Below, in pieces: positions 15,488 to 30,565 of a stretch of 64,000 nt of DNA (position 1 is its first letter; every line of letters begins with the position of its first letter). A program made the position numbers and the translations under genes. Location: sequence record OZ196285.1; one strand, written 5' to 3'. The notes below the pieces were generated by a model. The model was not told the DNA's origin and did no database searches. It saw only the letters and a program-made list of their open reading frames with translations.

Positions 15488-16936
15488 TTATACTGCGTAC
15501 CGGTCGATACCAACAGTCTTCATCATGATCTTCACTGGCTCAAGCTCGCCATCAAGTAAAGAAGTCAGGATAGATGGACTACAACCCGACACAAGTGCCG
15601 TACCTGCCTCACCCGTTTTCACTGGTACGTTGTCTAGACGACCGCGAATGTTCCAGAACGCTAGTTGCGGCATTTCGTAGCCCGCTGCTGCGTATTGAGC
15701 TTTGATAGCATCAAAGTTTGTTTCTGTGCGGCTTGGCCAACCACCACCGCATTTCGCAGTGTTGAATTCCATGTCAGACATGATCAACATCTTCGTAGGC
15801 ATTTCAGATTGTGGCAAGTTTGCACGCTGCGCACGCTCCAATAGCACTTCGAAACACTTCTGAATATCAGTGCTCATGTTCTCACCAGAACGACGCATGT
15901 TAGCAAGACGCGTTGACAGTGTATCACCAACAAGCTTGTGGAAATGTGGATCGCCTGAGAACGAAATGAACTGATCTTTGAAGATACCTTCGTTACGTTC
16001 AGCTACGTAGACACCAAGAGACATCGCTACGTCCATACAAGTTGTAACAGTGCCCTGTGAATAGCAGCTACCTTGTTCTGAGTTAATCGCACAATTCATT
16101 GAGCCAGACACATCAACAACAGGGATGATGCGCTCGTCAGACCCTTCCATGTAATTCGGAAGTGCTTTCCATTGCTGATCTGCTACACGTGAATCGCCCA
16201 TTCGTACGCTGCGAACAACGTCGTAAGGGAAGACTGCACCTGCATTGATCTTAGCTTCGCCTTTCTCAAGCTTGTTGATGTACTCACCGTAGTTCTCAGC
16301 CGCGTTACGACCGAATGCTTTCTGATAACGCGCAGACGCTACAGATGGCAACTTACCGAAGTCGATCTCGTTCCAGTTCTGTGAACACATTTTCTGTTCA
16401 ACAGTGTCAGACAGCGTAGAAATGACCTTACGCCATTGCTTCGATGTCACGCCAAGCGCCTTGATAGTGCGCTTAAACACGATACCGTTTTTACTCTTCT
16501 CACGAGGGAACCACTTCGCAGCCAGTGCGTTTTTGCCGTTCACGATTGCATTTGCCCATAGAGCAATTGCATCAGACTCAAGAGGAGTACCGAACGCAGT
16601 CACTAAGTCATCGAAACGACCTAATTCTGGCACCTTGTGCATTACAGCACGTGCAACGTCAGGGTTTTTCGCGATAAGTTCAGCGAAAATGCGACGGAAA
16701 GTACCGCGCTCACCTGCACCACCGCGCACGTCGCGAGACCATAGCAAGATACGTGTTGCTAGTTCAGGGTTTTCACCGTATGCGCGATTGAACGCATGTA
16801 CTGAATCTTTGTTACCGCGCATTGCTGCTACAGTAAAGAACAAGTTCAGACACTCGTTACCCGAAGTGCTGTGTGTAATTGCACCGTTTGCTGTACGTGC
16901 GTCGTTTGTGCTCATTGCGTTCATAAATGCTGACAT
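15488..16936 (-). CDS. DUF2828 TROVE-like/vWA protein (Ro60-related RNA-binding protein)
   Basis: T.NGA..H..S, RDVRGGAGER, GRFDDL, AAKW.PR and SVA..RY.KAF motifs; vWA MIDAS VVDVSGSM and MSDMEF. Start moved to 16936 (SD GAGGA). Confidence 0.9.
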   Translation of the reverse strand: MSAFMNAMSTNDARTANGAITHSTSGNECLNLFFTVAAMRGNKDSVHAFNRAYGENPELATRILLWSRDVRGGAGERGTFRRIFAELIAKNPDVARAVMHKVPELGRFDDLVTAFGTPLESDAIALWANAIVNGKNALAAKWFPREKSKNGIVFKRTIKALGVTSKQWRKVISTLSDTVEQKMCSQNWNEIDFGKLPSVASARYQKAFGRNAAENYGEYINKLEKGEAKINAGAVFPYDVVRSVRMGDSRVADQQWKALPNYMEGSDERIIPVVDVSGSMNCAINSEQGSCYSQGTVTTCMDVAMSLGVYVAERNEGIFKDQFISFSGDPHFHKLVGDTLSTRLANMRRSGENMSTDIQKCFEVLLERAQRANLPQSEMPTKMLIMSDMEFNTAKCGGGWPSRTETNFDAIKAQYAAAGYEMPQLAFWNIRGRLDNVPVKTGEAGTALVSGCSPSILTSLLDGELEPVKIMMKTVGIDRYAV

Positions 16937-24305: not shown

Positions 24306-24382
24306 TGGATGCGTGAGAGTGGATTCGAACCACTGACCTCCGGCTTATGAGACCGACGAGCTGACCGCTGCTCTACTCCGCA
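24306..24382 (-). tRNA. tRNA-Met(CAT), initiator-like body
   Basis: D arm and variable loop resemble tRNA-fMet; one bulged base in the acceptor stem; CCA. Confidence 0.8.
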
Positions 24383-27491: not shown

Positions 27492-28010
27492 TTATCTAAG
27501 GCTGAACTGCAAGTTGCGCCAATCCCAAGAACTATTGCCTTTGCGATTGTGCCATGCGTGCCAGTCTATTTTAATGGGACAGTTCTTCGAACCGACACGA
27601 GCGTAGAAACGTTCGTATGTGTCAGTCTCTCTAGCCTGCTCTCTAAGCAACTTTTGACGTTCATTGATATAATCACTGCACGCTTTGTTATAGTCTGCCC
27701 TAGAGAACTTGTGTTGCTTACTGCGTTGCGTGCTGAATTTCATATTCAGATAAGGTCGAATCACATTGACGTGAGTACGTGACCATCGCATACTGAAGCT
27801 TTCTTCAGTCTGTCCTAGAATTTCACCAGTCTTCTTGTTGCGTGACAAAAGCACCCAACAGCGTTCACGAGTATAATCAGCCCGTGACATCACATTTACA
27901 GATTCAGTATGACGCATGTTATACAAGCGTCGTACGTCTGAACGAACCCCGGGACTCATTTTGTCTCTAGTCTCACGGTCAAATGCATGTGCAAATCGCA
28001 ATAGTTTCAT
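27492..28010 (-). CDS. Arg-rich hypothetical protein
   Basis: Start moved to MKLLRF at 28010 (SD GAGGA); the longer ORF runs into an ncRNA. Confidence 0.65.
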   Translation of the reverse strand: MKLLRFAHAFDRETRDKMSPGVRSDVRRLYNMRHTESVNVMSRADYTRERCWVLLSRNKKTGEILGQTEESFSMRWSRTHVNVIRPYLNMKFSTQRSKQHKFSRADYNKACSDYINERQKLLREQARETDTYERFYARVGSKNCPIKIDWHAWHNRKGNSSWDWRNLQFSLR

Positions 28011-28023
28011 GATATTTTCCTCT

Positions 28024-28267
28024 TGTCGCCGCCCTGTGGAATCGAACCACTTCAAACACAACACATCATCAACCCGATAAGAGTTTCGAAAGTCAGAGCC
28101 TACCAGCATGTCAGATCTTGAGCTTTTTTTATTGCATCAGAGAAATTCGACTCCCTCTGATCTTTTTCTTATTACTCGCCCGAGTGATTCGCAACGGAAG
28201 TCAGTAATTAATTGACGACTGAAGTAATGTTCGGGAAACACTGCGTATTGTACACCGAGTAGGCGGC
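28024..28267 (-). ncRNA. ~240-nt RNA closed by a tRNA-like acceptor stem and T arm
   Basis: 5' GCCGCCT pairs with 3' GGGCGGC after GTGG-TTCGATT-CCAC; several internal hairpins; dedicated promoter. Confidence 0.6.
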
Positions 28268-28289
28268 ATAATGTTAATTTCTAGACACG

Positions 28290-28318
28290 AGCTTAACGCT
28301 TTTTTTAATGTCTGTCAA
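28290..28318 (-). promoter_or_regulatory. Sigma70 promoter
   Basis: TTGACA-17-TAAGCT just upstream of the 240-nt RNA. Confidence 0.75.
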
Positions 28319-28341: not shown

Positions 28342-28419
28342 TGGTGACCCTCGCGGGACTCGAACCCAGCTATCTTTCGGTTATGAGCCGACTGCTTTTA
28401 CCTGTTAAGCTAAAGGGCC
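28342..28419 (-). tRNA. tRNA-Ile2(CAT), lysidine type (alternatively Met)
   Basis: GGCCCTT acceptor and CTCATAA loop as in ileX-type tRNAs; CCA. Confidence 0.8.
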
Positions 28420-28420
28420 A

Positions 28421-28783
28421 TTATGATAACCACTTACCGACTTTAGCCGCGAAGATTGTCGATTCTTCATTTATCAGTGCAGTGCTCTTGATTTGATGAA
28501 ACGCATCTTGTTGATGCATCTGATCAAGCTTGTGAGCGCACTTGGCTAAGTCTTTAATCGTTTTCATTATTTCTTCTGTATCGAGTTGAGACGTTAAGGG
28601 ATGATGCACTAGATCGTCTAGCACAGCTTCTATCTGCCCGTAACAGCCCATACCGATGAAGTTAACAATAAGTCGATACTTCATTTCAACAGAGAACGAA
28701 CAATGCTTTCTCAGATTGCGTTTTACAACTTCACAACGAGTCAAGCATACATCTAGTTCTGTCTTAATTGCGTCAAACGGCAT
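28421..28783 (-). CDS. Hypothetical protein
   Basis: 120 aa, SD AGGTGA. Confidence 0.65.
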   Translation of the reverse strand: MPFDAIKTELDVCLTRCEVVKRNLRKHCSFSVEMKYRLIVNFIGMGCYGQIEAVLDDLVHHPLTSQLDTEEIMKTIKDLAKCAHKLDQMHQQDAFHQIKSTALINEESTIFAAKVGKWLS

Positions 28784-28800: not shown

Positions 28801-28923
28801 TGGTGGAGAGTAGTGGATTCGAACCACTGACCTAAAGACCCATTCGTTTTAATGTTTGCAGCATGAATGCTTTACAGAATTCTTTTAACATTCTTTTGCT
28901 CTACCAAACTGAGCTAACTCTCC
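28801..28923 (-). ncRNA. 123-nt tRNA-like RNA with an expanded anticodon domain carrying CTGCAA (element E)
   Basis: Perfect acceptor GGAGAGT/ACTCTCC-A-CCA, canonical D and T arms, AAAGA/TCTTT stem enclosing about 53 nt. Confidence 0.8.
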
Positions 28924-28935
28924 AGAAAAAACACA

Positions 28936-29057
28936 TTGATGCGGGTGCAGGATTCGAACCTGCGTCACGATCTTATGAATGATATGCGATTTGATTGCTG
29001 AATACAAGTTTGTCAACTTGCGTTTGCTACGTGTGCTAACCACTACACCAACCCGCA
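28936..29057 (-). ncRNA. 122-nt tRNA-like RNA with an expanded anticodon domain carrying CAGCAA (element F)
   Basis: TGCGGGT/ACCCGCA acceptor, D-like arm, T arm GCAGG-TTCGAAT-CCTGC; ends CAA rather than CCA. Confidence 0.8.
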
Positions 29058-29100
29058 TCAATGTGTTCTTGTGATGCTACGAATCAACGTAGCATCCGAA

Positions 29101-29301: not shown

Positions 29302-29423
29302 TGGTCGAGTGTACTAGAATCGAACTAGTCCCACGATCTCCTAATGATATGCTAAATTGGTTGCTGAATACAAGCTTGTCAACTTGCGTTATGCTACGTG
29401 TGCTGCCACTACACCAACACTCG
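29302..29423 (-). ncRNA. 122-nt tRNA-like RNA, paralogue of element F (element G)
   Basis: CGAGTGT/ACACTCG-A-CCA, T arm ACTAG-TTCGATT-CTAGT; insert nearly identical to element F. Confidence 0.8.
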
Positions 29424-29440
29424 ACCAATATGCTTTCTAT

Positions 29441-29844: not shown

Positions 29845-30117
29845 TTACGATTGAATGATAATGCCGCTTTCCGTCTCACCGCGCTCTAGTGCTGCATGTT
29901 TAATTTGCAACTGAGAGACTGCGTGCTGAAGCTCAGTGATCGTCTGGTCATATAGCTTCATGTTGCTTTGCATGTGTTTGATTTGATCGCTCTGCAAACC
30001 CATGATGTACGTTAGTAGAATGATGCTCTCATTATCTTCAAGAGATTCGGGAGCTTTATTGTACTTGTCTAGTACGCTTTGCAGTGTGACACCGCCAAGA
30101 TTAGTTTCATCAGCCAT
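29845..30117 (-). CDS. Hypothetical coiled-coil protein
   Basis: 90 aa, overlaps the end of 57B. Confidence 0.7.
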   Translation of the reverse strand: MADETNLGGVTLQSVLDKYNKAPESLEDNESIILLTYIMGLQSDQIKHMQSNMKLYDQTITELQHAVSQLQIKHAALERGETESGIIIQS

Positions 30118-30565
30118 TGTCTTCCGTCCACCTTAGGTCTAGTGGTTCGACGTATTCATCGACTAAGCGAATTTCAGCGTCTACTTGTAAAGGAGTGATT
30201 GCATCATCATACGATAGTGTGACGTGCGGTGAGTAGTCAGGGTAGTCGTGAGTACCGCCGATAGAGATAAGATCGTCGTGACGTTCTGTAAGCTCAGGAC
30301 AAACAAGTTTTGCAACGACTGCAAACTTACCGTCCTGAGTTTTCCAACAATCAATATAAGTCACTTTAGCAACGAACACTGTATCAACAGTAGGTACGTC
30401 AACTTGTTTGCGGCTGTATAGAGTTGTTACGTGAAACTTCTCAGGGTCTAAAGGGTTTTCTAGACGAAGAGTTGTTTGCAAGCGAACTAACTCTTGCTTA
30501 CTCGCTTCGTCTAGTTTGATACCAACGTACGTTCCCTGACTTTCAAGGAACGTAGATAGTTTCAT
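30110..30565 (-). CDS. 57B: gp57B 2H-phosphoesterase (Acb1-like)
   Basis: Two HxT motifs (FHVTTLYS, PHVTLSY); position after 57A. Confidence 0.9.
   Translation of the reverse strand: MKLSTFLESQGTYVGIKLDEASKQELVRLQTTLRLENPLDPEKFHVTTLYSRKQVDVPTVDTVFVAKVTYIDCWKTQDGKFAVVAKLVCPELTERHDDLISIGGTHDYPDYSPHVTLSYDDAITPLQVDAEIRLVDEYVEPLDLRWTEDNG

Follow-up and report, generated by a model that had tools for sequence, protein, structure and literature searches.

What occupies the upstream end of the tRNA gene cluster of Vibrio phage F86: the beginning of a protein-coding gene, or an RNA with tRNA-like ends? The window analysed here is the last 64 kb of this KVP40-like member of the Straboviridae (OZ196285.1; 64,000 nucleotides) and carries on its minus strand a cluster of 26 tRNA genes identified with ARAGORN and Rfam. 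An initial annotation, made from the letters of the window, had proposed at this place an RNA of about 240 nucleotides (nt) with its own promoter, closed by an acceptor stem and a T arm and recalling transfer-messenger RNA (tmRNA). We found that the 244-nt element at 28024–28267, at the upstream end of the cluster, is almost certainly a real, conserved and structured non-coding RNA gene that had previously escaped annotation. Among related phages its sequence is conserved, its helices are maintained by paired changes, and no reading frame is kept. The gene runs on the minus strand from a 5′ G at 28267 to a 3′ end reading ...GGGCGGC-G-ACA at 28024; its parts described below lie on the same strand, with positions falling from 5′ to 3′.

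Taken singly, the F86 sequence is not beyond chance expectation, because a strict pattern of acceptor stem, T arm and GG motif matched twice in the window against 0.9 times expected in shuffles, and the single-sequence fold had a minimum free energy z-score of −0.58. The case for a structured RNA is carried by the comparative data, in which covariation is strong in every helix. Sensitive blastn searches recovered homologues of the ~240–250-nt segment, full length and at 71–75% nucleotide identity, in 49 Vibrio phage records, among them KVP40, phi-pp2, VH7D, ValKK3, phi-ST2, nt-1, VS1, QD01, CZ01, the D48x/K5xx series and 1.081.O. Two closer relatives, L019 and L020, came from Logan assemblies, the former near-identical to F86. 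As the adjoining protein shows 43–52% amino acid identity in the same genomes, the RNA segment is the better-conserved feature. None of the records inspected annotates the element as an RNA; where they have any annotation there, it is a spurious small open reading frame (ORF) or a neighbouring ORF stretched over the RNA. Exact-pattern scans of the IMG/VR and JGI metagenomes returned KVP40 and VH7D only, or nothing.

RNAalifold predicted 67 base pairs from 13 sequences, 35 of them with compensatory changes. On the same 13-sequence MAFFT alignment we counted the pairs of a curated structure of nine helices and 65 pairs, with 3′ partners slid by 1–3 columns and 500 shuffles as controls. In the curated structure 95.0% of the cells were paired, compared with 38–45% in the slid controls; 38 of the 65 pairs were changed on both sides, compared with 10–15, and the covariation score was 0.52, compared with 0.07–0.14. 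No shuffle reached any of the observed values (0/500), and double changes were present in every one of the nine helices taken singly. The proposal of a discrete non-coding RNA with a tRNA-like closure is thereby borne out, as the acceptor stem, the T arm and the six internal helices all covary. A covariance model of the F86 type (R1) scored the F86 RNA at 195.8 bits, end to end.

From 5′ to 3′ the RNA consists of an acceptor stem, a 10-nt GG-bearing linker, a helix P2 that closes three hairpin domains, a T arm, a discriminator base and ACA. The acceptor stem P1 (6–7 bp) pairs the 5′ strand GCCGCCU (28261–28267) with GGGCGGC (28028–28034), as originally proposed; its cells are 100% paired, and four of the six pairs counted show compensatory changes. 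The 3′ strand, at 28034–28028, is followed by the discriminator G at 28027 and the tail ACA at 28026–28024, all read directly. The place of the D arm is taken by the single-stranded linker ACUCGGUGUA (28251–28260), whose GG (28256–28255) is invariant in the Vibrio-phage alignments and recurs in the Ci1-like and D479-like RNAs introduced below; it would act as a mimic of G18/G19 touching the T loop. P2, the second helix of the covariation count, pairs CAAUACGCAG (28241–28250) with UUGUGUUUG (28053–28061) through 9 bp and one bulged U. It is 100% paired and in the nt-1 clade has double changes from A-U to U-A and from A-U to G-C. A local hairpin GUGUA-CAA-UACGC considered instead of P2 was rejected for its weaker covariation and for a change in VH7D/L020 that makes U-G into C-A.

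Domain 1 (D1; 28179–28235) is made of the P3 stem CCCGA/UCGGG and a long hairpin, helices 3 and 4 of the count, with both-sided changes in 13 of 20 pairs. It contains the pairing UCAGU/ACUGA, and its apical 7-nt loop is of AUUAAUU type in F86 and 1.081.O and UUCGCNA in other phages. In domain 2 (D2; 28121–28176), formed by P4 and the hairpin P5 (helices 5 and 6; double changes in 11 of 14 pairs), AUCAGAG at 28161–28155 faces CUCUGAU at 28142–28136 and the loop GUCGAA (28151–28146) is invariant. The initial annotation had picked out both of these hairpins, and both are present in the sequence. Domain 3 (D3; 28065–28116) comprises P7 and P6 (helices 7 and 8) and a 17-nt loop with the invariant UUCGAAAC at 28090–28083; its pairs are swapped between A-U and U-A at 169:191 (6:6) and between C-G and A-U at 154:205 (7:6). 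Sequence conservation is highest near the multi-helix junction and in D3, the most conserved part of the RNA. Two nucleotides separate the 3′ strand of P2 from the T arm (A)GUGG-UUCGAUU-CCAC(A) (28035–28051; helix 9), which has compensatory changes in four of its five stem pairs, an invariant T-loop core GUUCGA and nearly invariant remaining loop positions. Acceptor 5′ strand and T arm are about 210 nt apart.

A search for covarying stacks outside this model yielded no convincing pseudoknot; its remaining candidates were three G-U pairs that may prolong P2 and a CUGA repeat with a possible alternative pairing. A tertiary contact is hinted at by alignment columns 14 and 24, whose joint change (U/G → C/A) is seen in two distinct lineages. 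Two other readings of the segment were set aside. A T-box-like reading of GGGUGGA failed on the UGG, which is not conserved (GGGU[GU]GA), and on the lack of an Rfam T-box match; an intron-bearing tRNA is contradicted by the missing D arm and the missing group I intron match.

The gene directly downstream (27492–28023, minus strand) encodes a basic protein of 172 amino acids (isoelectric point 10.3), with the ribosome-binding site (RBS) AAGAGGAAA from 28023 and the ATG at 28010. It belongs to PHROG family 15953 (phrog_15953; E 4e-56), whose profile matched only 20 clusters among 5.8 billion proteins. We fetched such loci from D479 and L021, and from Ci1, S13 and seven metagenomic contigs of Citrobacter/Cronobacter-type T4-like phages. 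Every one of them has a gene-free stretch of 257–272 nt directly before the operon RBS, and these stretches start G-C-rich and finish with a T arm and a complementary strand. In the Ci1-like group the acceptor stems covary (GCUCGU/ACGAGC, GCACGU/ACGUGC, GCGAGU/ACUCGC, GCGCGU/GCGCGC and GCAAGG/CCUUGC), and five of the eight RNAs have an A-CCA 3′ end. The Ci1-type alignment shows the same cap, that is, acceptor stem, GG strand and T arm, and the same P2 and three hairpin domains; it is 91.8% paired, and 40 of its 65 pairs carry double changes, a result matched by none of 500 shuffles. In the two D479-like sequences (D479 and L021) a comparable RNA of ~270 nt, bearing the same cap and a number of hairpins, agrees with the family in cap, similar length and position. 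The full architecture before a phrog_15953 operon is thus found in F86 and 14 aligned relatives and in eight Ci1-like loci. From the architecture, a shared CUCGGUG-type linker and synteny, we infer that the three sub-families are homologous. No literature or Rfam record of this RNA was found, and it is a new family among the known "tRNA-like stable RNAs of phages." The Ci1-like phages have a further T-arm element (CGCGAG-UUCGAAU-CUCGUC) between insert-bearing tRNAs and the 265-nt RNA (L018, ~2034–2190), and at the equivalent place L025 has a sub-threshold match to YrlA (1128–1188; 24.7 bits, E 0.18).

A promoter-like site lies on the minus strand at 28290–28318 and can be read directly as a −35 TTGACA (28318–28313), a 17-nt spacer and a weak −10 TAAGCT (28295–28290). 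The private promoter of the initial annotation therefore holds as a motif but is doubtful as a general feature: the −10 matches the consensus at 3 of 6 positions, a consensus scan did not report the site, and it is identical in L019 and absent from the other homologues. A putative 22-nt leader (28268–28289) would separate the −10 from the mature 5′ end. Further upstream, a tRNA-Met (CAU) occupies 28342–28419 (minus strand; ARAGORN and Rfam) and in relatives is likely to share a transcript with the RNA. The tRNA-Met of nt-1 ends 11 nt upstream of the RNA, and just upstream of it in KVP40 and L020 is the end of an ORF. Because the promoter recurs only in L019 and a tRNA or ORF lies directly upstream elsewhere, excision from a longer transcript would be the more general route. 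Position −1, immediately before the first acceptor G, is a U in F86 (28268), as it is in all seven homologues shown; bacterial RNase P favours U(−1) and would cleave after it. At the other end, positions 74–76 are CCA in the KVP40 clade (G-CCA) and ACA in F86, D482 and 1.081.O, and in the nt-1 clade AC comes after the discriminator. The F86 RNA, which runs into AAGAGGAAAAUAUC-AUG with the ATG at 28010, would have to be trimmed at its 3′ end and given a CCA, like some T4 tRNAs. Judging by these ends, the RNA is quite likely matured and stabilised by tRNA-processing enzymes.

On balance we favour, with some confidence, a model drawn from the sequence comparison in which the ends of the RNA form a tRNA-like cap around a ~180-nt core of three domains, and the molecule would be processed like a tRNA, stable and active in trans, possibly together with the phrog_15953 protein. 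In the cap a 7-bp acceptor stem stacks on a canonical T arm and a GG-bearing single strand takes the place of the D arm; P2, at the position of the anticodon stem, closes the core. Such a cap may recruit the host tRNA maturation machinery for an RNase P cut after U(−1), 3′ trimming, CCA repair or addition and modification of the T loop. The product would be a stable, discrete RNA excised from the polycistronic transcript of the tRNA cluster, which in F86 may also start at the weak private promoter. The RNA probably acts in trans and, more speculatively, the conserved junction and the D3 loop could carry that function, in a ribonucleoprotein with the very basic phrog_15953 protein that would parallel tmRNA–SmpB but lack a messenger function. 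At each of the loci inspected, the RBS of the phrog_15953 operon follows directly on the RNA, and a partnership with this protein is a tentative suggestion that we hold at less than even weight. The AlphaFold model of the protein (mean predicted confidence, pLDDT, 77) has no significant fold match in the PDB according to Foldseek, SmpB included, and Pfam and NCBIfam searches gave no assignment. It would go further, and we think it improbable, that RNA and protein form a tmRNA/SmpB-like particle whose chargeable or CCA-bearing cap enters or occupies host ribosomes or other tRNA-binding machinery during infection; if true, it would be a hijacker of the ribosome or tRNA pathway of a new type, possibly also explaining RNAC of phage T4.

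Several observations weigh against the capped, trans-acting RNA. The RNA and both of its ends are known here from sequence alone. The proposed partnership draws only on conserved adjacency and on the charge of a protein whose fold matches nothing in the PDB, and the adjacency to the RBS fits a role in cis equally well. The 3′ end is ACA in F86, D482 and 1.081.O and AC in the nt-1 clade, despite the CCA encoded by all 26 ordinary F86 tRNAs, so that a free CCA end may not be essential. There is no evident aminoacylation identity, because the discriminator varies (G, A or C) and only G1-C72 is universal. Finally, in the Ci1-like and D479-like RNAs model R1 aligns the cap but not the internal domains, even when its filters are switched off, and common descent of the three sub-families is for this reason deduced rather than demonstrated.

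How do other explanations compare? That there is no functional RNA, the segment being an N-terminal coding extension of ORF 27492–28109 or a decaying pseudo-tRNA, might seem natural, since gene callers stretch an ORF into the RNA in F86, KVP40 and two metagenomic relatives and KVP40-like genomes contain several "pseudo" tRNAs. This idea is already refuted by in-frame stops and covariation, and its remaining probability is negligible. ORF 27492–28109 overlaps the 3′ third of the RNA, with the actual start at ATG 28010 behind AAGAGGAAA. The in-frame extension up to 28109 is open in F86 but stopped within 12–18 codons in the KVP40 and nt-1 clades, and in every homologue a strong RBS, AAGAGGAAAUUAU (GGAGAAUAUU in the nt-1 clade), stands before the proximal ATG. 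Protein-level conservation thus does not reach back to 28109, and the ORF track overruns the RNA, as the initial annotation had warned. Substitutions keep base pairs rather than codons, in a nucleotide sequence better conserved than the neighbouring protein. Three-frame translation of eight homologues revealed no conserved peptide or frame in the core, and a tag ORF was rejected on the same comparison. A more serious contender is a leader or punctuation element acting in cis, attached to or cleaved from the mRNA of the downstream operon, which could set the mRNA 5′ end by tRNA-style processing, block 5′-end-dependent decay or gate the RBS. The 3′ end of the RNA does abut the RBS in all three sub-families (the RBS starts 1–10 nt past the acceptor strand), the junction CAAGAGGAAAUUA is conserved, the RNA never occurs apart from the operon in the loci inspected, and no private promoter is conserved. 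A leader, however, could do without a canonical T loop, without a GG elbow partner and without the exactly placed CCA of the KVP40 clade and most Ci1-like RNAs, and the invariance of the junction and loop sequences points to a specific ligand or partner. No conserved pairing sequesters the RBS, and adjacency as such is weak evidence because phage genes are tightly packed anyway. We regard the cis-acting element as unlikely.

The same anatomy could describe a miniature tmRNA-like molecule, aminoacylated and delivered to ribosomes, possibly templating a short tag. It has the topology of the tRNA-like domain of tmRNA (acceptor stem, GG analogue of the D loop, P2, T arm and, in some clades, CCA), it is accompanied by the gene of a dedicated basic protein, just as ssrA often has an SmpB gene nearby, and one frame ends in Cys (Cys-Trp in F86) followed by a stop in every homologue. 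The identity elements argue otherwise: pair 3:70 is always C-G in F86-type RNAs and differs among those of Ci1 type, which leaves no identity for alanyl-tRNA synthetase, and the discriminator is not constant either. None of the candidate peptides is conserved, the KVP40-clade frame being stopped a few codons upstream; no pseudoknots emerged from the covarying-stack search; the Rfam tmRNA model reaches the T loop only (7 bits) and ARAGORN is silent; and the phrog_15953 protein model is not SmpB-like. Such a molecule is very improbable. Scarcely better placed is a Y-RNA-like partner of the phage Ro-like protein (DUF2828 plus the vWA-like DUF7788; 15488–16936), a role that is conceivable and to which we assign a low probability. 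Bacterial YrlA likewise joins a Ro-binding site to a tRNA-like module, the F86 protein is homologous to mycobacteriophage proteins annotated "Ro-like RNA binding protein," in Ci1-like phages and S13 the Ro-like gene shares the strand of the RNA and is found ~1.2 kb upstream of it, and the invariant GUCGAA agrees with GNCGAA, the core of the YrlA motif. In F86 and KVP40, however, the gene is ~11 kb away, the Rfam YrlA model has no match on the element, and GUCGAA sits in a hairpin loop rather than a helix strand. The topology is also inverted, the ends of YrlA making the Ro-binding stem and those of the phage RNA the acceptor stem, and Felixounavirus Alf5 has a Ro-like gene by its tRNA cluster but, by motif scan, no such RNA.

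Other features of the window deserve mention. The Ro-like gene itself (minus strand) encodes a 482-amino-acid protein annotated as "RNA-binding protein," with relatives in 711 phage records. In Felixounavirus Alf5, Ci1-like phages and Cronobacter phage S13 such a gene adjoins the tRNA cluster, an arrangement suggesting that Ro-like proteins of phages are linked in general to their tRNA or tRNA-like genes. At 30110–30565 (minus strand) the F86 record has an "RNA ligase" that is an Acb1 phosphodiesterase acting against CBASS, the cyclic oligonucleotide-based antiphage signalling system (PF23474, E 7e-44). Its LigT/2′-5′ RNA ligase matches are below threshold, and the gene, identified as Acb1, does not speak for RNA splicing or repair. 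Between the long tRNA-like genes described below and tRNA-Met lies a 120-amino-acid ORF of phrog_27428 (28421–28783, minus strand) that resembles HigB/RelE-like toxins weakly and below threshold (18.6 bits where the cut-off is 27; E 0.0026), and at 24310–24381 (minus strand) the Rfam model recognises a tRNA (53.5 bits) that ARAGORN does not.

Among the closest known RNAs are the tRNA-like genes of about 115–124 nt, with a conserved insert, that the KVP40 record names tRNA-Pseudo. They share neighbourhood, phages and a tRNA-derived scaffold bearing a foreign module with the 244-nt RNA; they differ in keeping the D arm, in measuring only ~120 nt and in an insert, a hairpin plus UAUUCAGCA, unrelated to the three-domain core. 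In F86 three tRNA-like genes of ~120 nt lie on the minus strand at 28804–28923, 28939–29058 and about 29303–29425, the last missed by both ARAGORN and Rfam; their KVP40 counterparts are tRNA-Pseudo-3/4/5. Each has an acceptor stem, a D arm, a T arm and a ~45–50-nt module at the position of the anticodon arm. Two of the three have the motif AACGCAAGUUGACAAnCUUGUAUUCAGCAA in common, and its core UGUAUUCAGCA recurs in the D482, 1.081.O, Ci1-like and S13 loci. These genes look like a second conserved family of tRNA-scaffolded RNAs, not decayed tRNAs.

The resemblance to tmRNA is one of layout. An acceptor stem formed by the paired 5′ and 3′ ends is stacked on a canonical T arm, only a GG-bearing single strand is left of the D arm, a long P2 replaces the anticodon stem and encloses a big structured insert, CCA is encoded in some members, and a small basic protein gene adjoins. 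Against this stand a 3:70 pair that is C-G in 13 of 13 F86-type sequences and U-A, A-U or G-C in the Ci1 type, in place of G3:U70; the lack of a conserved resume codon or tag frame and of detected pseudoknots; a length of 244 nt compared with about 360 nt; and a neighbouring protein unlike SmpB. Rfam found nothing significant on the element at gathering and permissive thresholds, the tmRNA model RF00023 matching 11 nt of the T loop only (7.1 bits against a gathering score of 47), and ARAGORN called no tmRNA in the window or at four homologous loci. From a canonical tRNA the element differs in having a 10-nt single strand for the D arm and a 180-nt three-domain core for the anticodon loop, and neither the tRNA covariance model nor ARAGORN places a tRNA there. 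It is neither a tmRNA nor a tRNA. The initial annotation had judged the topology tmRNA-like yet distinct, without G3:U70 or an encoded CCA, and the C-G pair and the G-ACA tail of F86 agree with that judgement.

With YrlA the RNA has in common that it is non-coding, that its tRNA-like module could serve RNase P, the CCA-adding enzyme and T-loop modifiers, that it contains GNCGAA and that the phage encodes a Ro-like protein. GNCGAA is the core of a YrlA motif linked to Rsr binding, and the YrlA of M. smegmatis is cut by RNase P and receives CCA (PMC4201824). The tRNA-like module of YrlA is, however, internal, a D arm is absent from the phage element, and the Ro-like gene is not adjacent to it in the vibriophages (distances are given above). 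Rfam's YrlA model RF02553 gave sub-threshold matches only on adjacent tRNA pairs or elsewhere, and none on the element.

The nearest analogue by biology is RNAC of phage T4, although it is not a detectable homologue. RNAC and RNAD, the stable RNAs called species 1 and 2, have been carried as function-unknown for 50 years. Their role is still listed as unknown in reviews and in recent omics papers (PMC3014915, PMC9697503, PMC12685909). Like the F86 RNA, they are encoded as small stable RNAs within a T4-like phage's tRNA cluster, and RNAC combines a covarying terminal stem with a canonical T arm (CCGGG-UUCGAAU-CCCGG) and an N-ACA tail as in F86. In contrast, RNAC has 139 nt and a cloverleaf-like four-way junction without a closing P2; its D-arm position is taken by a long hairpin and its anticodon position by a separate one. 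T4 rnaC (L016, 1405–1550, minus strand) has homologues in EcS1 and KKP_3262 (L033 and L034), which show compensatory changes in the terminal and T stems and keep a U-ACA tail; one of these records annotates the 3′ part as tRNA-Phe. The covarying stems and the tail indicate that RNAC itself is a tRNA-derived, acceptor-closed RNA. The T4 rnaC and rnaD genes suggested as comparators in the initial annotation are thus analogues: model R1 finds nothing at the T4 rnaC locus, no sequence similarity is detectable either, the phrog_15953 protein has no tblastn match in T4, and RNAC is not adjacent to a phrog_15953 gene. The element is absent from Rfam and unannotated as an RNA in the records inspected, and its recognition corrects the annotation of about 50 genomes. 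It is spread over marine vibriophages (the KVP40, nt-1, ValKK3 and F86 groups), with a diverged form in Citrobacter/Cronobacter phages, and KVP40 and nt-1, which grow on laboratory Vibrio strains, offer a tractable system for the role of non-decoding phage tRNA mimics. Beside T4 RNAC and RNAD, the RNA family of ~240–270 nt with its fixed genomic partner protein provides a second, larger and much better constrained example of such molecules.

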